Position numbers and translations under genes: made by a program. Source: Adineta vaga (taxonomy: Eukaryota > Animalia > Rotifera). From it: DNA of 64,000 nucleotides. The notes under the pieces were generated by a model that had not been told where the DNA came from, did not search any database, and saw nothing but the letters and a program-made list of their open reading frames with translations. The stretch's first letter is position 1. Each line of letters starts with the position of its first letter. This document shows, one piece after another, positions 11,759 to 24,800 of this stretch. The stretch covers positions 2,170,001 to 2,234,000 of the forward strand of contig CP075492.1 in the NCBI GenBank assembly GCA_021613535.1. Direction: 5' to 3'.

Positions 11759-12446
11759 TTAGTGAAGAAAGGGATTGAAACTGCCAAATTTTTGAACACA
11801 TGCACGACAGATACAACCGCCTTCGCAGTGATGAAGTGCTATATTGCTGAACTCAGTACCTTTCTGACAGTTCGCGCAAGTGAACGGGCTACTCATTTGA
11901 GAATATTGTCCAAACGAACAAGACGAGATACGATGTTGCTTTTTCAGCGCTTCGCCACACAACGATACCTTCTTATTTTGGCGGAGTTTATGTTCGTTTT
12001 GATATGATAATCCTGCCGAAGAGTGGCTACCGAAAAGTCTTGCAGCGTTTTGTTGTATTCGACATTCACCAACTGAACCAGTACATCGATCACTCATTGG
12101 CTTTCCTTTGTTAAACAGTGTAGCAAGGAATTGAGTGTATGCGTGATTGCGTTGTTTTTCTTGTTCAAGTTGCTGCCGAAGTGTTTGTAATTCATTAATT
12201 AACGGATCGTAAACATTCTTCAGAGATTGATTAACATCGGCAATAACTGGACGAATTTTTTGGAAAGGACATTCTCGAAGATGATTTGCTAGTGTACTGC
12301 GGGCTCCTTTCCATGTACATTTGATGTCAGATGCAGGACAAGGAACTATCTGTTGAGGACATTGTTCTTCGTGTTGATTGATGTCACCGCGTTGTATGTT
12401 TGGTCGCATCGTTTACAGCGCATTTGAAGTCTATGCAGTTGATTAA
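11759..12446 (-). pseudogene. TRAF-type zinc-finger protein, 5'-truncated by the piggyBac and frameshifted
   Basis: HEEQCPQQIVPCPASDIKCTWKG..H...C (zf-TRAF), a coiled coil and a Cys-rich C-terminus. The upstream frame LNQLHRLQMRCKRCDQ runs into the TTAA TSD and is shifted relative to NIQRGD. Confidence 0.7.
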
Positions 12447-14519
12447 CTCTCCGTTACTTTCGTGGGGTCCAGGTGGACCCACTTTGCATTTTTCTAATCC
12501 ATTCTGCGCAATTGTATGCTAATTAGAATTAGTTGTTTTTTGTAATCTCTAGTCTTTGGATGACCTATAATATCTGCATGAGAAATCACATATATATCTT
12601 TTAGAAAAAAAATATAGATATGGGTCCGCTCGGACCCCAGGACACTAATTGTGCTATATATACAATTTTGTGGTTTATTATACCTATTTCGCGTTGTATA
12701 TTGATTAATTTTTAGAATAAGTAAACTATGAGTCGTATATATGTCTATCTCTTGTATCAGTGACTAATATTTTCTTGATTTTGTGATACGATTTTATTTT
12801 TTCTCGATAAAAAGCAATTTTATGTAATAGAATATTTTTGTTAGTTCGTATCAGTCCTCTAATGTCCCTACGATCATGATAATATAAAAGTCTACAAATA
12901 TACAACTGATATACTATTATTTTTGCGACACGATATAGTTCAACGTATTGAAATACACTTGTATTGAAAGTCTCTATTCGATTATACTAGTGTATTTCTA
13001 CTGATATTATATCGCATGTTATTGAAACGTGTCCGACGAATTTATCCTTTCTAACATATATTTATGGATTTATCCTTTGTTATGATTTTACCATATATGT
13101 TTTCTTTCGTCTTTTTTCCTTTCTGTTCTTCCTCTCTATGTCTGTTTTTACCTCTTTGTTTCTGCTTTTTATCATAGATTAAACTTTTCACTCACAAATT
13201 CGACAAGATTTATACACAACATGAATGATACACAAAAATCAAATCTAAAACGAATTAGGGATCTTTTGCTTTATGATGAAAACGAAAACGATTACATTAC
13301 TAGTCAAGATTCCGATTCAGACAGTGATTATGATTATGTTCCTGTTGAATCAGATGATACATCTGCAAGTGAACATGTTTCACAAGAATCTGCAGCATCA
13401 AATGATGATGATGATGATCAAGCCAATGTTTATACAGTTGATCAACCGGAAAAATTAGAAAAAGCCGGCATCACATGGTCAATTCATACAAATCCAACAA
13501 AAGGACGAATACCAGCTTATAATATAATGAAAAAGAAATCTGGCTCGATCACTAATGTACAAACGATTCTAAATTCATTTAAGCTATTCTTGACTGATGA
13601 AATACTTGATGAGATTGTTATACAGACGAATTATTATGCTGAGCAATGTTTTGATCAAAATAAAAAGTTAAAGGCAGAATCTCATTCTTCAACACTCAAA
13701 TCAAGTAAATGGAAATCGTTAGATCGTGTCGAATTAGAATCATTCATTGGATTGTTAATACGCTCCGGCGTACATCGAAGCAACCATGAGTCTCTGAGTG
13801 AATTATGGGACATCAGTCAAAGTTGCCCACTATACCGTGCAACAATGTCCCTACAACGTTTTCGACAGTTGCTACAATTCATCCGATTCGATAATCGTCA
13901 TACTCAAGATAAAACCGATCGTTTGTCGTCGATCAGACATGTGTTTGAACTTTTCGTGAAGCAACTTCCCAAACATTTTATACCTGGTGAAAATTTAACA
14001 GTAGATGTGCAGTTGGTACCATTTCGAGGTCGTTGCTGTTTCGTACAATATATTCCTAATAAGCCGGCGAATTATGGTCTTAAATTTTGGTTATTATGTG
14101 ATGTGGACAGCCGCTACGTGTTGTCTATCGACCTTTATACTGGAAAAAAAAACAACACTATTCAAAAGAATCTTGCAACTAATGTTGTACTTCATTTGAT
14201 TGATCAATTACCAGATAATGTAAAACAGGGTCGTACTGTTACATATGATCGTTATTTTACAGATATCAAATTATCTGAAGCTTTATTAGATCGAAAAATG
14301 ACATCTATTGGTGTCGTCGATTATCGACGTGCATTTTTACCTAATGAATTAAAAGTATGCCGGAAAGATTTATTTTCATCATGGTTTTATTTTTCAAATT
14401 CTCATATGCTTTTATCATACCAAGCAAAGGAAAAGAAAAAGCCAATCATACTTCTATCTTCTTTACATACATGTGCTGAAACATTTGATGATGATAAACC
14501 TAGTGGGATAGGGCAAACT

Positions 14520-14709
14520 TGAAGTGGAAAAGTACAGCAAAGTACAAAAGTAGTTCAAAGTATTCGGAAGTAGCTCCAAGTATAGGAAAGTAGCTCAAAG
14601 TAGCGCAAAGTACTTGGAAGTACGACGAAGTACTTCAAATTACAGCAAAATTACGTCCAAGTACTTCAAAATTACGCGAAAGTACTTTAAAGTAGCATCA
14701 AGTACTTAA
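14520..14709 (+). repeat. Left subterminal array of about 11-bp AA(G/T)TA(C/G)nnn units
   Basis: About 18 units such as AAGTACTT, AAGTAGCT and AATTACGT. Confidence 0.9.
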
Positions 14710-14840
14710 TATGTATTTTGATATCTAGATTCACATGGAAACAAAATTAAATGACATGGGAAAAATTTAAAAGATTGCTTTATTCACTTCAAAATGAGAA
14801 TAATCTCGAGCAAAACATTAAAAATAGAGGAATAAATTTG

Positions 14841-17580
14841 CTAATTGTTAGTAGATGTCTGTTGCATGACACGGGATAAACGATCACTTGATAATTTGGT
14901 TATCTGGTTCGATTGCATCCAGCATGCCGATTGTTTGTGAAGATATTTAATGTTGTTATTGATTTTGACCTTGAAATATGACTCTCTTAAGGCTGGATTA
15001 ATATCATCCACTATTCTTATTCCATTAAAATCAGATTTTGTTGAATTTAATATATCAACATCATCATCATCATCAATTAGAGTATCGTTTTGAAGATCAA
15101 ATAGAGCTTCATTAGTAGATTGATCTAGTGGATCATTTATAAGATCATTATCATCATTTTCTTCATCCAATCCAAACTCTTCATCGATATTATTTTCTGA
15201 TCGGAAAGAATAATTAATCATTCTTGAATTTTTCTGCAGTAAATCAAAGATATAGCAACTCAAATCATCCAAAGAATTTATCTTATATTGCGTTAACGTA
15301 TCTAACATTTTTGAATGTTTAACAAGATCAATTGCTTGATTATATGCAGCTAATATTAATTGTTGAACATCTAATGTATCAATATCGTTCAATTGATGTA
15401 ATGATGCTAAAGAATGTTCACGTCTTTGTTTGTGATGCACAGGAAAGGATAAATCTTTTTCTGTTGCATTATATTTCAATTGATTTAGTATTGATAGTTT
15501 TTGTGAACGTCGAATAAAATCTTTTACAGTAAAGTTAACTATTGTTGACGACATACTGCTTAACGATCTTGCATCTCTAAATAATGATTCACAGGGTTGT
15601 GAACTGAATAAATGTATATTGATTAATGCTTGTTTTGGCAATTGTTGTTGTTTTACCAGTAGAACCATATATGGCAAATGATGTGCATTTAGTTCAACAG
15701 ACATGTATGCTGGTCTAGTAATAAAATACTCATTAATTTTATTTTTTCTTTCGTTTGTTGTTTGGCTGGTTCTTGATGGCTTTAAATTCGATGAATTTGC
15801 TAGCGAGTACCACCATAATCGACAAACAAACACAACACACCATGCTGATTTAACACCTAAATACATACAAATTGACAAGGATTAATAAGTTTGAGTTTTT
15901 TTATTTTCAAACTCTAAAAATGAACTCACGTTCTTGAATACTTGTTGATTTATCAATATATGCTTTTACTATCATTTTTAGCAATGTTAAATAAACAACT
16001 GTTCCATTTGAATCGACATCGTTCTTAAGCAGATTTATTACATCGTCTGATATTAATTTAATGCATGAACTATAATTTTGACGATCTTTCGGATTAATAT
16101 CACTCATCGTCAAACCATGATCAATTTTTGTGTAATTATCATTATTGATCAATCGCTTCAAATGTCCCATACTAATTTTATCATTACCAAAACATAAATT
16201 CGCTGTTGATGATAACAATCTATTTCTCCATTTCGTTACAAGATGAACTGGATCTTGAAAAAATAAGAAAAGTTGATTTTTGTTAAGAAAAAACCATGTC
16301 CAATCATCTGGTATGTCTATTTGAAATACATGTTGATGCTTGTCTAATTTGAAATTTGGTAACGATGCAAAGAAATTACTTGCAAGTCGCATAGCACTGA
16401 CATATTTATTATCTGCATCTATTCACAATATACATATATTTTAGAAAAAGATAGACAAGATAAACTTTACCCGTTGAGAAGCCTATAATACGCACGCCTT
16501 TAGCTAAACAGTTTTCAAATATATACATCCATCGTCGTAAAATATCCATAGTGGTAAACTTATTATCAACACCGTAGGCAGATAATAAAAATGGCTTTGG
16601 AAAATTTATTGGATCATTATCTGTTGATATACTTTGGAACATATGTACATTCAATAATCGTGCTGTTTCATTTGTATCATAGATCGCTTTTAAATCCTCA
16701 TATGTATCAGCCTGATAATATTTCGTTAATGGAATACCATCAACAATTCGTGTTGAAAAACCGATAAACGAGTTTGTTGACGAATCATATTCGACTTTAG
16801 GAATGACACCTGTAGTGTCTTCAGAGCAGAACCCAAAACCTGATTGAAACTGTCGAAGTGAATCGAATCTAAATTCTGCTTCATTTAAAGTCATATTTGA
16901 TTTGCTTATTAAATCACTGATTATTGATAGATGTGGTATAGCACCAGGCATATTTAAACGAACAAACTCATAACATTGTTTACCACCAAGGATATATAAA
17001 CACATTGCGAACTTTTTTACGGATTCGGAATATCTGAAATGATTTGAAGGTTTTGCAAGATTAAATACTAAATTATCGACGAATGACATCAAAAATTTAT
17101 CTGTCATATTGTTATCTTGTAATTCATTTAGCTGATACCATTTAATTAACGATTTTAAAAGTGGATGTTTGTCAATAAAACTATCAGTTACATATTTGCT
17201 TTGATTTTCATTATTATCATTCAATGTTACTTTTTCTTCTTCTTCTTGTTTTAATTTTTGTTTTAGTATTCTGATTAAATATGATAAATCAGTTTGAATA
17301 CCAGGTTTAACAATATATAAACCACTTTTAGATTTAAAACAAGATTCAGCTTTAATAATATCTGTTTCTGTTGATTTAATTTGAAAAAAGGCGAACACAT
17401 CAGGCGTAGCTAATAGTTTTCTCGCCGAATTGATTAATTGTATTTTTAAAATATGGCATAAAGAATCACCTGTTAGTGATTTGACAATTGAAAAAAATCA
17501 TCATCTACACGTGAAAAAACATCATTTGGTAGAACTGATGCATCAATAAATGAATCATTATTGAATAAGTTCGACTTCAT
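14841..17580 (-). CDS. P-element-like DDE transposase without a THAP domain (introns 16419-16470 and 15857-15929; 1-nt frameshift in a T-run near 17491-17497)
   Basis: Spliced motifs CSEDTTG, GFSTDAD, FQDPVHLVTKWRN (D(2)H), DRQN and SSQPCESLFRDAR (catalytic E), as in P-superfamily transposases. ATG at 17580. Confidence 0.85.
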
Positions 17581-18698
17581 TTCGTACAATAAGCTTCTGT
17601 GAATACCTAAAACATTTACCACAATGGATATAAGAATGAAAAGATTTCAGAGAAAAACATTACTATTGAAAAAATTAAGATGTGATTGTAATTATTTTTT
17701 TTGTTCAATTATTTTTAAACAGTTTTTTAATAATTATATTGAGATAGTGATAGAATCAACTCGAGTTTGATTAGAAAATTAATCTGAAAGCAGATTATAA
17801 TATTTAATATTAAAAAAATTATATCAGTGAATCGTTCGACAATCCAAAAGAAGAGATGATCAAGAATAGCTGTTATTCGATGAATACTGCTATGTATTTA
17901 GTAAAACAAGAAAATAAAATTATTAAATACATCTGAATATATTGTTCAACTCTTCATTTATTTTTATTTTCAAAAAATATGTTTTTTTTATAAGATAATA
18001 AATAAGTAAAAAACGATATTGAATGAGTATCCATATGTGAAAGTAACATAAGTGAAAAGTTGATAGAACATGAGAACAACAACAAAATGATGAAAATATG
18101 TATCAACCAAATATGTTTCAAGAAATTTTTTTATTAAAAATACTAGTTTAATAGAAAAATAAAAATTGATGTTTGTAAATAAGTATTAGAGGAGTTATCT
18201 CAAACCGCGTTAATAACAATAAGTTGAATGTTTATACGACTACATTGAAGAAGCATTCCTGATGAAAATACGCTTCATAACATAAGAATAATGTACACCA
18301 AACTTTAGCTGCATTATAATATACTCGACAAAACTATTCCCAAATTTTTAATTGTTGAAAAAAAAATAATCTCTAATCTATTAATATAGTTGAAAAGAAT
18401 TCATTGATGATCACTAAATTCCTTCGTACTAAATTTGTTTTGCAGATGTCACTGCTTCATGAAAACAACTAGAAATTCACTCTGAAGTAAAAAAATGTAA
18501 ATAAACTAGTCAACCGTGGTTGGTTAATTGTATTAAGCAATCGATCGTTTTATCTTTGTTGGCTTAATTTAAACAATTCAGATACTGTTAGATCATTTGT
18601 GTGTAGTTATATTTTCAAAAAGTATTTTCAATGTTCAAATATTAATTGTTGAATTTACTTATGTTTTTCTTGAAATTTAATTTTAGAAGATTTTCGAT

Positions 18699-19664
18699 AT
18701 GCCGACGTCTTATGATTTCGATTATTTACCAGAAAATGTATTAGCATTATCCGGTTATGATTTCTTTCAATTTATAAAGTCTACTTTAGGAGAACCAGAA
18801 GCTAATCTATTACAAAAGATATCTGTCAAAACAACATCGTCTTTATTACTTACTGAAAATCCATTTGATATTTTTAATTGCGATATAGATGATGACGAAT
18901 TGACCACATTAAAGAATCAATTATCGTTCAAATTAAAAAATGATAAATATATGATCAAACCTGGTGTTATTGCAGGCTTTCGCTCGCTAAATGATGCTTT
19001 AAAAAGACGAGTTGATGAACAAGCAACAAAATCTAAAAGAAAAAAAAAACAACAATCACAACAATTATCTCATACAAACTCATCATTTATATGTTCATTA
19101 CCGTCGACATCACCACCATCAGCACCAACACAATCAGTACCTCATCGATTTTCATTAGCTGAACATAGAGCACATATTGTTAAATTAATAGAAAAATGGT
19201 GCTCAGATAATAAAGAAAACTTTGGTTTAGAAATTTTCACTTTAGAAGAAGATGTTGATTTTAATTTATTTATTGATTCAGATGGAGATGCTGATGTAAA
19301 AGCAAATATTAAATGTAAATGTAATAAATTAATTTCATTAGGCAAAAATGATAATAGAATTCAAGTATCTAATTATTATAAGCATTTGCAGTCAAATGGT
19401 TGTGATTATATGAAAAATATTAAAAAAGCTGCAAAAGATGCACAATTAGAACAACAGCAGCAGCAATCATCATCATGTATTATATTGTCGTCACATTTAT
19501 CAAATGCACCAGTAATACAAGATGATGTTTCACCGCTTACAACACAAGCAACGGCTAATACTGATTCTAAAACATTAACAAATCAACATTCATCCGGTGG
19601 TGGTAAACGTCGTTTAGCATCACAATCGCAAAAAGATATTTCGACAAAAAGACGTCGGACATGA
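18699..19664 (+). CDS. Accessory protein of the P-like element (N-terminal domain paralogous to the transposase N-terminus; CxC..H..C zinc-finger-like motif; basic C-terminal NLS)
   Basis: Intact 321-aa ORF inside the TSD-bounded element, preceded by a TTTTAG acceptor. Motifs CKCNKLISLG...YYKHLQSNGC and TKRRRT. Confidence 0.85.
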   Translation: MPTSYDFDYLPENVLALSGYDFFQFIKSTLGEPEANLLQKISVKTTSSLLLTENPFDIFNCDIDDDELTTLKNQLSFKLKNDKYMIKPGVIAGFRSLNDALKRRVDEQATKSKRKKKQQSQQLSHTNSSFICSLPSTSPPSAPTQSVPHRFSLAEHRAHIVKLIEKWCSDNKENFGLEIFTLEEDVDFNLFIDSDGDADVKANIKCKCNKLISLGKNDNRIQVSNYYKHLQSNGCDYMKNIKKAAKDAQLEQQQQQSSSCIILSSHLSNAPVIQDDVSPLTTQATANTDSKTLTNQHSSGGGKRRLASQSQKDISTKRRRT

Positions 19665-19894
19665 ATTTTCTTCTCTTTTTAATTCGTACTTTAATTCACA
19701 TGTGATCACTGTTTTATTCGTTTTTTAAATAAACCATGGAAATGGAAATACTTCTGAAATAATACCGTTTCTGTCACTTTTTCTCACATATATTTTATTG
19801 TTCATATCATATTATGGATTGCCAAAAACAAGATAATCATTATCTGTTATCCACAATTAATATTTACAGTCATATTGAGCCATTTTAGATGCGT

Positions 19895-20070
19895 AAGTAC
19901 TTCAAAGTATCGAAAGTACTTGAAGTAGCGTAAAGTAGCTTAAAGTAGGTACAAGTAATGAAAAGTAGCTCAAAGTACTTTAAAAGTCCTGTGAAGTAGT
20001 TAAAAATAGCCTGAAGTACTTTAAAATTACGTCAAAGTACTTCAAAGTAGCATAAAGTACTTCAAGTACA
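19895..20070 (+). repeat. Right subterminal array of about 11-bp AAGTA units
   Basis: About 17 units, on the same strand as the left array. Confidence 0.9.
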
Positions 20071-20499
20071 AAAGTCTGCTCTTCCCCCCTTGTGATAAAC
20101 ACTTACCATGCGCAATTCATGATTATAATCAAACAAAATTTGGTGTCGATATTGTAGACCAATGTGTTGGAACTTATACAATACGTCGAATTACTCGAAG
20201 ATGGCCGTTGATGGTTTTTTACAACATGATCGATATAGCCGCAATTAATAGTATGACTATTTGGTTGTCTCAGAATCCTGAATGGAACAGAAGAAAAACA
20301 AATACTCGTCGCATATACTTATCACATCTCAGTACCGCTTTAACTGCATCACACAATCAACGTCGTAGTCAAATATCTCGTCTGATGCCGAAAGTCAAAC
20401 TTGCACTTTTGTCTCTAGGTTATCAAGTTCCATCAGGTTCTATCAATGATCTCGGTGTGAATACTCATTCAAATCGTACTAAGCGCAGATGTTATCTAT

Positions 20500-20722
20500 T
20501 GTGACGAGAACAATATCATTCTATCGGTCATATTACCGTTTGACTTCTCGGTTCATTCTTTCGTTCTTATCTTCGCTTCATTGGTCTGTATGTACATTTC
20601 TCTTCCTCTCTCTATATAAGCGTGTGTCTTATTGTGAAGTAGGGACATTCTGGTCATGTAGAGTAGTCAATAAACATCATACCGTGAGAGGCGGTTAGCT
20701 ACTCAACCAGTTTGTCATTACA
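20500..20722 (+). mobile_element. Solo LTR (223 bp)
   Basis: TGT...ACA termini; 5-bp TSD TCTAT (20495-20499, 20723-20727); TATATAA at 20613-20619 and AATAAA at 20669-20674. It splits the piggyBac CYLC codons. Confidence 0.88.
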
Positions 20723-21822: not shown

Positions 21823-24800
21823 TTATTGAGGTGTACGAAATTTTTTAAAGATTTTTTCGATGACTGCATTGAATTCTGTCTTGTATGTTTTTGATGGTAA
21901 TACAAAAACAACAAATATTGACATTGATGGAACGAATGAAAGGAAATAACCAATTAAAAACAACCAAGGTTGCTGTGTTGATCTCATACAAGTACGTGTG
22001 AATGAAATGATCAAACGAGGTAAACTTAATAATATTAATATCAAAGGTGAATATAAAAGATGTTGATGTTGTTGAATTTGATGTTTTAAATGATGTTGTA
22101 CTGTCTGACCACGTTCCACACCACGTCGTCTATAAGCTAATTGAATAATCATCCAAAGAGAAGAAATGATATTAATAGAGAAAGGTGTAAGAAAATGAAA
22201 AAGAATAATAAATGAATTGTAGTTTTCAATCAAAGATGAATATCGAACAAAACACCAAATTCGATGTTCATCAATATCAAAATCATCAATCAATTGACGA
22301 TGAGGTGGTTCATGAATATGTGTCAATGTTACTAAAATGAATACAATCAGGATAATTCGTTTAGAAAACTTAACACTTTTCTTTCTTTGAAAACGCGTAG
22401 CCATAATAACACTAAACATTCTTTCAATCGACACACAGCAATTACACCATTCACTTGATGCAAGAAGAATTCGAAGAAGAACATCGATTGTAATACAATT
22501 AAAATAAAGTAAAGATTGATTCGTTATGAAAGATGTTTGAGATAAGATTAATAACCAAAATTTATATGTTAATGTAATTATTGTAAAGATTGAAAAAATC
22601 GATGAAAACAAAAGATAATAACCACTTCCCATTTGTTTAACTTTAATTCGACGAAATGTAACAAATGCTAATAAACCATTGATTATTCCAATAAGTAACA
22701 GAATCGTACTAATAACAATACTTATTTTAACGACTAATGATTGTTCAGTCAACGAAATCTTTGGTTTAATATGATAAGCAAGGATTGTATCGAGTGAAAA
22801 GATAAAACCTCTAGTTGAAAATTGACATTTACCACCATAATAACAATCCCGACAGATACAAGTTAATTTGGTTGGACATGTTGCATTATTTTGAAAACAT
22901 TGACCTTGATTTTCACAATAATTATAACCTGGACAATCATTATTGATTGTATGATTAAATAGAAAACAATTAGCAAATCGATCTTGATCACATAAACACA
23001 TCTGTTCGTGATCATGAAAACATTCTAATTCAAGATTCTTTCGACATAATAATGGATAATATTTCACTCGTCGTAAATATTCATATTGTTGAAAAGTTTC
23101 ATTCAGAATAAGTTGATCGATTGAAAAACAACGTTTTTTCAATTGTATTTCCGTACGGATATGTTCCGAAGGATGAAATACTTCTCGAAGTATTGTTAAA
23201 TAATAATATTTATTTGGTATTTGTACGAAAAGTATATGAAATGATTTTGTATTATAAACTGTTAAAATCTTTTGATTAAAAGAAATTTTTCTCAATAAAG
23301 TCCGTCGCTCATGTTCTCCATGATTAAACGATGTGATGAAATGTATTAATACTAATGATGTAATTGATCGTATTTCTTCATTTAGATATATATCGATACG
23401 AGTATTTTCAATTTCACATCGTTTTCCCGAATAATCTTCTGGACAGAAACAAGTAAATTCTGTTAAACTAATTCGATCATCAACTGGAATACAAACTCCA
23501 TTATGTTCACATGAATTATTCGTTTTTGTTTGACAACTCGAATGTTTTAAATGACAATACGAACCAAATTTATTCAACGGACAGATACATATAGTTGAGG
23601 TTAAACAGAATGAATCATCTGCACAATGACATTGATGTTTAATATTACAATCAGTACTAGAATATCCATCATTGCATAAACAAAAACTCAATGATTTGTT
23701 ATTGATATAATTCATACATTTACCATGTTCGCCACATGAGAGAGTACATGACTCGTGATTCGGTAGTTCGGGAATTCGTATTTGAGTAGCAATTCGATTA
23801 ACCGGTAAAAATTGAAAAGGTATAGGTAGATACCAACTTAACCAATAGATTACATTTATTTTTTCATAAATATCAATACGAATTGAATAATTCCTTAATA
23901 TAGATTTTGGTCGATCTGGATAAAGTAAATACAGATTATATTTTGTATTACAATCACGATCGGGCATATAAGTAATTCGTTCATAATATGCTTCAATTTG
24001 TCCGTGTTCATCAATAAGCATGATGATCAGTTCAAATATTGTCATCTGAAATGTCATACTACGCCATACTAATTGGATTGTTAAACTAATGCGTTGATTT
24101 TGCCATTGACATCGAGATCCAAAATAATTTGGTGGACAAAAACATGTTTTTGTTTGATTAGAACCATGTAACACAAGAATACCACGATTACAATAAGAAA
24201 TTGATTCATTATCCATATTCGATGTGAGTCTTGATGTTGAATTTGCTTGAGGTAGAAGTGAATTCGAATGATTTATTGATAATGATGGATAATATCCTAG
24301 TCGAGACGTTTTGAAATAAGGAGGAATAATTCCGCTTAAAGCTGAATGAAATGTACAAAGATATTCGTCATTTGGAATAAGTTTGATGGTTTTTTCAATC
24401 GTTCAATAGAAATTTTCGGATGAATACAGGCAAATGTTTTCTTCGAAGATGATATTTCTAAATAAGAATTCATTCGACAGAGTTTATCGAAATTTAGACA
24501 GTGACTATTATTCCAAGAAAAGTAATCTTTACTAATATCATCTGTTCCATTGTAAAAGTAAACATTACGCTTAATATATGTTTCATTACAAGAATTCAAA
24601 TATTTATCATACATATTGGTTAATGATATACAGTAAAATGATTCAGATTGTTGTACAGAACAATCATGTTTATTGTAAGAACATCTCGAATTCGGACAAT
24701 TAAGTTCATCGATACCATTTGGACAATTCCAGTGTTCATCACAATGTGTGTAGGGATTATCACAAGGCCACCAATGACAATTCGATTCATCTGTATGATT

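Follow-up and report, generated by a model that had tools for sequence, protein, structure and literature searches.

A two-gene, P-like transposon of bdelloid rotifers whose transposase and partner protein begin with a homologous domain

Background

P elements are the textbook example of a single-protein DNA transposon, and the THAP zinc finger counts as one of the family's defining features; a canonical P element carries one inverted THAP site per end. Other DNA transposons divide the work between two proteins. In PIF/Harbinger elements (Harbinger3_DR), a Myb-like partner recruits the transposase to subterminal sites and carries a nuclear-localization signal. The KP and 66-kDa repressors of Drosophila P elements keep the DNA-binding and multimerization parts of the transposase without the catalytic part. 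Here, we analyze a DNA transposon of 5,593 bp at positions 14500-20092 of a 64,000-nucleotide stretch of the genome of the rotifer Adineta vaga (G000:C3:2170001-2234000, hereafter "the window"), which encodes a P-like transposase and, in a second open reading frame (ORF2), a partner protein that starts with a homologous domain.

The family to which this element belongs has features in common with each of these systems. With the P superfamily (Drosophila P element, vertebrate THAP9, Galileo, and 1360) it shares an 8-bp target-site duplication, short terminal inverted repeats, the P-element helix-turn-helix (HTH) domain PF12017, and internal sites beside the terminal repeats; the nearest language-model and predicted-structure neighbors of its catalytic core are P/THAP9 families. 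It differs in having a SAM-like domain in place of THAP, a second co-inherited gene, and about 18 phased, direct-orientation sites per end, and the Pfam models for the P-type RNase H, GTP-binding (GBD), and C-terminal regions are not significant on the rotifer transposases. With PIF/Harbinger it shares the arrangement of two genes in one unit bounded by terminal inverted repeats, a non-catalytic partner with a putative DNA-binding domain and a signal resembling one for nuclear localization, and the proposed logic of a transposase recruited to subterminal sites. However, the transposase belongs to a different superfamily, and in the partner a CCHC zinc domain stands where Harbinger has Myb/SANT (Pfam scans of ORF2 gave no Myb/SANT match); we know of no homology between the N-terminal domains of the two Harbinger proteins. 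With the KP and 66-kDa repressors it shares a non-catalytic protein with candidate DNA-binding and multimerization parts, and the potential for site competition or mixed oligomers, but those repressors derive from the transposase gene by deletion or alternative splicing, whereas ORF2 is encoded independently, brings a zinc domain of its own, and is conserved throughout a class of animals.

In its proposed working the system is closest to PIF/Harbinger, and by descent it belongs with P elements. What is new relative to P elements is the SAM-like domain duplicated between the two genes, the CCHC zinc domain without a known relative, and the phased arrays in the same orientation. A preliminary description of the locus had suggested that the architecture might be undescribed; literature searches found no description of a two-gene, P-like architecture (entries in Repbase and Dfam lay outside this comparison), which leaves that suggestion standing.

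Results

The transposase and ORF2 start with a homologous domain of about 100 amino acids (aa). BLASTP aligns the two N-termini of the window at 29% identity over 83 aa (E 4e-9), and an hhalign comparison of 19 transposase N-domains with 30 ORF2 N-domains returns a probability of 99.95% (E 7.9e-38, 106 columns). The preliminary description had proposed this similarity from the single pair of proteins and had named, as the outcome that would count against it, a profile-profile comparison without significance; both comparisons place the similarity far above chance.

It had also suggested that the shared domain is a SAM-like helical bundle and had called for a structure search. The AlphaFold2 model of the ORF2 N-domain (mean predicted local distance difference test score, pLDDT, 88.3) contains five helices, with a small beta-hairpin between helices 4 and 5. 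An exhaustive VIA-align search of structures has SAM domains as 24 of its 25 top matches (Z 5.0-6.5, root-mean-square deviation (rmsd) ~2-3 Å over 60-77 aa), the sole exception being the C-terminal domain of the RNA-polymerase alpha subunit, and several of these SAM matches come from SAM-SAM heterodimers or polymers. The predicted five-helix bundle superposes on the SAM domains of Ph/Scm, CNK/HYP, Yan/Mae, and TEL and on the LEAFY N-domain with an rmsd of ~2-2.6 Å over 65-70 aa, and differs from them by the extra beta-hairpin, by a Z of only 5-6.5, and by the absence of a sequence-level match. The structure search was thus positive with VIA-align and negative with Foldseek, which returned nothing from the Protein Data Bank (PDB) at E ≤ 0.001; no SAM_1, SAM_2, or SAM_PNT match was found by Pfam at E ≤ 0.1 on proteins that bear the domain, and a profile of it gave chance-level matches only against PDB sequences. 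Because the Z scores are moderate and neither Foldseek nor the SAM sequence profiles match, we call the domain SAM-like in its predicted fold, with moderate confidence, and not a proven member of the SAM family. A complex prediction for the N-domains of one cognate intact pair (transposase and ORF2 of the A. vaga locus L026) scored 0.02, a value obtained without control runs that weighs neither way on binding.

The partner gene is inherited with the transposase inside the element, as in other two-component DDE transposons, both in other assemblies and among the paralogues in the window's genome. In the other assemblies, ORF2, recognized by its N-domain and zinc domain, is the gene immediately upstream of the transposase at 11/11 loci (L069-L077, L079, and L080), seven of them from named bdelloid species. 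Six of these loci had been chosen through the transposase alone, so that this subset is not biased towards ORF2, and all six have it; the preliminary description had listed frequent absence of ORF2 from relatives as a finding that would count against it, and its presence is what we observe. In the A. vaga genome that we searched (100.8 Mb, six contigs), where paralogues were read within ~1.5 kb of each match, head-to-head pairs occur at C1:16.13 Mb, C2:16.11 Mb, and C3:0.63 Mb and tandem pairs at C2:15.55 Mb, C2:0.26 Mb, C3:15.93 Mb, and C3:19.87 Mb, with one full copy of the window's own subfamily. The layout first described, two head-to-head genes about 1.1 kb apart, is correct for the window, with starts at 17580 for the transposase (minus strand) and at 18699 for ORF2 (plus strand), but does not hold as a general rule: the order is tandem (ORF2, then transposase) at L069-L072, four of the 11 loci in other assemblies, and head to head at L073-L077, L079, and L080.

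The family is large and, as far as names go, bdelloid. A profile of the N-domain retrieves 555 cluster representatives among 1.84 billion proteins, 380 of them at E ≤ 1e-10. About 45 of the best 150 representatives are ORF2-like, that is, 290-360 aa long with the zinc motif, and the long ones are transposases. Among the matches listed, all named members are bdelloid: Rotaria magnacalcarata, R. socialis, R. sordida, Rotaria sp. Silwood1 and Silwood2, Didymodactylos carnosus, Adineta steineri, A. ricciae, and A. vaga (B3G4J8). Public records label them "unnamed", "uncharacterized", or "THAP9-like HTH domain-containing". In some public gene models, ORF2 is fused to the transposase (P0001, P0144) or to unrelated neighbors; P0144 carries HEAT repeats and P0154 an ion channel and an M36 peptidase, and at such loci the Rotaria and Didymodactylos annotations are chimeras.

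Purifying selection acts on both genes, as indicated by ratios of nonsynonymous to synonymous substitution rates (dN/dS) of 0.16-0.41, values that are approximate because dS is near saturation. Against L079 and L080, the transposase exons give 0.16-0.21. ORF2 as a whole gives 0.26-0.41, and by domain, in four intact orthologues of 311-321 aa, 0.12-0.32 for the N-domain, 0.27-0.51 for the linker, 0.24-0.41 for the zinc domain, and 0.36-0.88 for the tail. This was a comparison that the preliminary description had asked for. The nucleotide sequences of both genes match those of L079 at 77-82% identity, while the intergenic spacer cannot be aligned.

Within the window's subfamily, the trees of ORF2 and of the transposase N-domain are nearly congruent. 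The deep nodes of the N-domain tree are unresolved, and the tree therefore neither shows nor excludes a single ancient duplication of the domain. At the tandem locus L026 (G000:C2:15551707-15555681), the N-domains of ORF2 and transposase group with each other (support 92/79) and not with their own classes, possibly through gene conversion or a second duplication. The ORF2 N-domain of the window is 71% identical to that of a copy in Rotaria magnacalcarata (L077), and an Adineta ricciae copy (L073) is closest to this Rotaria copy in both gene trees. Such closeness across genera could reflect either horizontal transfer from one bdelloid genus to another or lineages that are old and have co-existed.

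Three lines of evidence together support placing the family in the P superfamily, as a divergent lineage of it in bdelloid rotifers. First, exon 1 of the window's transposase matches PF12017 at 26.2 bits against a cut-off of 23 (E 1e-5), the sole significant hidden Markov model (HMM) match on the protein, and the same domain is found in L047, P0148, P0144, and many homologues. Second, an ESM-Atlas search with residues 110-815 of the relative P0148 has clusters carrying TNP-like RNaseH_N, GBD, or RNaseH_C families as 10/10 of its best named clusters, of P/THAP9 type (scores 0.86-0.95); the predicted structure of P0148 superposes on THAP9 and P-transposase clusters with a TM score of ~0.47-0.49 over ~400 aa. 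Third, the family has the 8-bp target-site duplication and terminal inverted repeats of the superfamily: four perfect duplications and a repeat of ~21 bp are observed. The evidence supports the P-like assignment of the preliminary description. On the other side, the Pfam models for the P-type RNase H, GTP-binding domain, and C-terminal region (PF21787, PF21788, PF21789) were significant neither on the transposase nor on its relatives, a scan of the window's genome with the P RNase H models gave no match on these elements, and a profile of the whole transposase family searched against PDB sequences returned chance-level matches only and did not match the P transposase. A match to Integrator-3 of the C-terminal reading frame of L047, from a single-sequence PDB search, was rejected as spurious.

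The THAP zinc finger is missing from the transposase, as had been noted for the window. No exon piece of the window's transposase has a THAP match in Pfam; the spacer between the genes (17581-18698) holds no reading frame longer than 55 aa and hence has no room for one; and PF05485 (THAP) occurs in 0/92 homologues. The shared N-domain begins at residue 2-13 of full-length relatives, so the place that THAP usually occupies in a transposase is taken by the SAM-like domain of ~100 aa.

The transposase gene lies on the minus strand in three exons, ~871 codons in total, comparable to full-length relatives, which are mostly 815-887 aa among those listed; the exons were searched as separate pieces. 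Exon 1 (16471-17580, start codon at 17580) encodes the SAM-like N-domain, the P-type HTH, and the start of the catalytic core. Intron 1 (16419-16470; gtaaag...aatag, 52 bp, GT-AG, phase 1) was read from the sequence. Exon 2 (15930-16418) begins within the motif FSTDADNKY, is 50-60% identical to paralogues, and has a dN/dS of 0.16. Intron 2 (15857-15929; gtgagt...tttag, 73 bp, GT-AG, phase 1) restores the frame, and relatives are colinear across it. Exon 3 (14841-15856) encodes the C-terminal third with the motif SQPCESLFRDAR and the stop codon; it has tblastn matches in L070 and L071 and a dN/dS of 0.20 against L079. The transposases of the family end in a conserved YLHKQSACW...DRLxRV motif. 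A single frameshift interrupts exon 1 in a run of seven Ts (17491-17497). It is real because L079 and L080, the nearest relatives, have no break of frame there, which also confirms the single frame correction made earlier; either this copy of the transposase is broken or the assembly has a homopolymer error. The spacer of ~1.1 kb between the divergent genes is the presumed site of both promoters.

ORF2 is intact in the window (321 aa, plus strand, 18699-19664). Its SAM-like N-domain (aa 9-105) is followed by a linker rich in serine and threonine, a CCHC zinc domain (aa 153-245; ligands C206, C208, H229, and C235), and a basic bipartite tail (aa ~300-321). When 40 ORF2-like proteins (19-57% identity to that of the window) are aligned, only four columns are invariant, and these are the four ligands (window numbering), set in the motif CxC...(Q/I)LSN(F/Y)YKHL...C with the spacing CxC-x20-26-H-x4-6-C; the CxC..H..C pattern seen earlier in the one protein is therefore a conserved zinc site. 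A model of the zinc domain (114 aa, pLDDT 85) consists of a helix, a four-stranded sheet, a zinc knuckle, and a helix. The domain has no Pfam family in any of the 40 members, only chance-level matches in a profile search of PDB sequences, and, for the model against the PDB, no Foldseek match at E ≤ 0.001 and no VIA-align match above Z 4.9 over the whole domain. Neither zf-BED nor THAP is among the families shown for the 40 members scanned, and the ligand spacing differs from those of BED (Cx2C...Hx3-5H) and THAP (C2CH with an AVPTIF box). The tail looks like a bipartite nuclear-localization signal, in keeping with the signal proposed for the partner: two clusters of K/R with a serine-rich stretch between them are present in 11 of the 12 ORF2-like tails printed (judged by eye), and K+R make up 26% of the last 30 aa versus 13% overall. 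A strict bipartite pattern matches 4/39 ORF2-like proteins and 0/35 full-length transposases.

The element ends in terminal inverted repeats of ~21 bp. The left repeat CTAGTGGGATAGGGCAAACTT (14500-14520, plus strand) is degenerate, matching the right one at 15 of 21 positions with several bases off the consensus CAAGGGGGAA, while the right repeat (20072-20092, minus strand; reverse complement CAAGGGGGGAAGAGCAGACTT) fits the family consensus. The start CAAGGGGGAA is conserved in L070, L071, L074, L076, and L077, and as a pattern it has 14 sites in the window's genome versus 0 for the reversed control pattern. Inside each repeat lies an array of ~18 AAGTAC/AAGTAG units with a spacing of ~10 bp. 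On the left (14525-14707, plus strand) the spacing is mostly 10 bp, and on the right (19893-20071, plus strand) the units have the same orientation as those on the left: the non-palindromic AAGTAG occurs 11 times on the plus strand and 0 times on the minus strand within the element's ends. Because the arrays point the same way, the two ends are not mirror images beyond the terminal repeat of ~21 bp.

In L070-L074, L076, and L077, the gene pair sits between two arrays of this kind that share one orientation, with a period of 10 bp (19-20 bp in L070); one array was seen in L075. The motif differs between elements: GACTCCATTG in L074, CGTACTT in L076, TACTT in L073 and L077, CATTGACAAT in L071, a 19-20-bp unit in L070, and GGATCCA-type units in L072. 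In the four AAGTAC-type elements, it reads (G/C)TACTT on the sense strand of the transposase at both ends. Other short repeats, tandem and inverted, lie just outside or inside related elements, e.g., a 31-bp unit repeated 15 times in L074 (8462-8946) and palindromic blocks of 10-11 bp in L076 (2450-2810 and 4550-4880).

The window copy is flanked by the octamer TGATAAAC, a perfect 8-bp target-site duplication (14492-14499 on the left, 20093-20100 on the right). It is inserted in a piggyBac transposase gene (PF13843, E 2e-55), and removing the element together with one octamer yields an uninterrupted piggyBac reading frame. The boundaries and the duplication are exact, since this frame resumes past the second octamer, and the limits given at the outset for the element need no correction; the nested insertion is a natural empty-site control. 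Further perfect 8-bp duplications flank L076 (CGTAAACC), L071 (GTAAATAT), and C6:13071079-13074124 (AACTTAAA). The last of these (L008/L002) is a non-autonomous relative of 3,046 bp with good terminal repeats of the CAAGGGGAA type, and its perfect duplication shows that the window's subfamily has moved in its own genome. The window copy itself is old and slightly decayed. Short, MITE-like (miniature inverted-repeat transposable element) pairs of ends are also present, e.g., at C2:1416408-1416615.

The window is AT-rich (GC ~30%), with short spliceosomal introns. The piggyBac-type transposase that the element splits occupies 13221-14499 and 20101-20504 (plus strand). Upstream of it, a 216-aa reading frame rich in cysteine and histidine (11759-12409, minus strand) is TRAF/zinc-finger-like by eye. 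Just past the piggyBac remnant, an intronless reading frame of 797 aa (21823-24216, minus strand) has several EGF-like repeats rich in cysteine and, after them, a seven-helix-like membrane region.

Discussion

What might a second, non-catalytic protein do for a P-like transposase without a THAP finger? The best supported of the explanations that we considered, at about even odds, is that ORF2 serves the transposase in DNA recognition and nuclear import and recruits it by way of the shared domain. As the element's subunit for these two tasks, ORF2 would bind with its zinc domain to the short, 10-bp-phased, same-orientation motifs beside both terminal repeats, would associate with itself head to tail along the arrays through its SAM-like domain, and would capture the transposase through the homologous domain of the latter, so that the HTH and catalytic core of the transposase would be placed on the CAAGGGGGAA termini; it would also bring the transposase into the nucleus. 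We infer three of these steps, namely array binding by ORF2, SAM-SAM contact between the two proteins, and nuclear import by ORF2. SAM domains typically associate head to tail, and such association would give the bound subunits a single orientation, as the arrays show.

A more specific form of this proposal is tentative, and we think it rather improbable: the SAM-like domain might be a polymerization module, with ORF2 forming an oriented filament on the 10-bp-phased sites and the transposase, which has no targeting domain, joining as the terminal subunit. If this were true, end recognition, end polarity, and nuclear entry would all have been delegated to the second gene, and the element would have a P-type transposase guided by a filament, with a left and a right end that differ chemically.

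Several observations weigh against the targeting proposal or the framework in which we place it. Membership in the P superfamily stands on one marginal HMM match together with language-model and predicted-structure neighbors, with the P RNase H Pfam and PDB profile searches empty. The SAM similarity is moderate (Z < 8) and found neither by Pfam nor by Foldseek at the thresholds given above. The zinc domain has no recognizable fold relative and no Pfam or PDB-sequence match to suggest DNA binding. Its putative recognition stretch, QLSNFYKHL, is near-identical across lineages with different array motifs, which makes ORF2 a poor fit to a simple reader of those motifs, and a comparison of zinc-helix residues with array motifs over ten elements showed no clear co-variation. 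The transposase's own HTH, instead of ORF2, could bind the arrays. Finally, a few A. vaga copies lack ORF2, as there are only ~730-870 bp between the terminal repeat and the start of the transposase; a sister copy (L044) keeps a remnant of the ORF2 zinc domain, which suggests that these copies lost the gene by secondary deletion.

Among the alternatives, a built-in repressor survives best, although we consider it doubtful. Under this explanation, ORF2 would play the part of the Drosophila KP and 66-kDa proteins from a gene of its own: it would occupy the arrays or, through the shared domain, poison transposase oligomers and so keep copy number low. ORF2 does have the parts of a competitor (an oligomerization-type domain and a likely nucleic-acid-binding zinc domain, without a catalytic region), and the family is low-copy in the window's genome, with its single full copy of the subfamily. 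But a repressor would leave the reader of ~18 phased sites per end unexplained, as the transposase has, its HTH aside, no sequence-specific DNA-binding domain. Retention of ORF2 at 11/11 loci of other assemblies under purifying selection fits a required factor better than a dispensable brake, even though self-limiting elements can also retain repressors. The NLS-like tail, too, is on ORF2, with the strict bipartite pattern in 0/35 transposases, though in only 4/39 ORF2-like proteins. The targeting and repressor roles are not mutually exclusive: at a high dose of ORF2, the protein proposed to recruit the transposase could also compete.

We judge it unlikely that the HTH of the transposase reads the arrays while the zinc domain of ORF2 binds RNA, host chromatin, or a host factor, which would make ORF2 an import or tethering adaptor that acts through the shared domain. 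This explanation arises because the zinc helix hardly varies between lineages with different array motifs, and it would also agree with the lack of a fold relative for the zinc domain among known DNA-binding fingers and with the conserved basic tail of ORF2. However, one HTH per transposase is ill suited to ~18 same-orientation, 10-bp-phased sites per end, and in the model of the zinc domain, specificity could sit in the variable beta-hairpin before the helix.

That ORF2 is a passenger or chance neighbor with no role in the element, such as a captured host gene or an annotation artefact, might be suggested by the A. vaga copies that lack it but is effectively excluded, given that ORF2 lies inside a unit bounded by terminal inverted repeats and target-site duplications, has a domain homologous to one in the transposase, adjoins the transposase at 11/11 loci of other assemblies (seven of these loci from named species), has a dN/dS of 0.26-0.41 with invariant zinc ligands, and has a tree nearly congruent with that of the transposase in the window's subfamily.

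Conclusions

The element belongs to a bdelloid branch of the P group that has no THAP domain and is carried by a whole animal class, and in this branch DNA recognition has seemingly moved to an unannotated zinc domain of a partner gene. As such, it would be a natural, testable case of a transposase split into catalytic and targeting subunits, convergent with PIF/Harbinger. The analysis defines two protein domains and thereby bears on hundreds of database clusters that are now "unnamed" or "uncharacterized". It may also improve transposon annotation in bdelloid genomes, where ORF2 and the transposase are now mis-merged or unclassified in public gene models. For the family itself, the element offers a compact system in which to study the role of phased, same-orientation sites in transpososome assembly.

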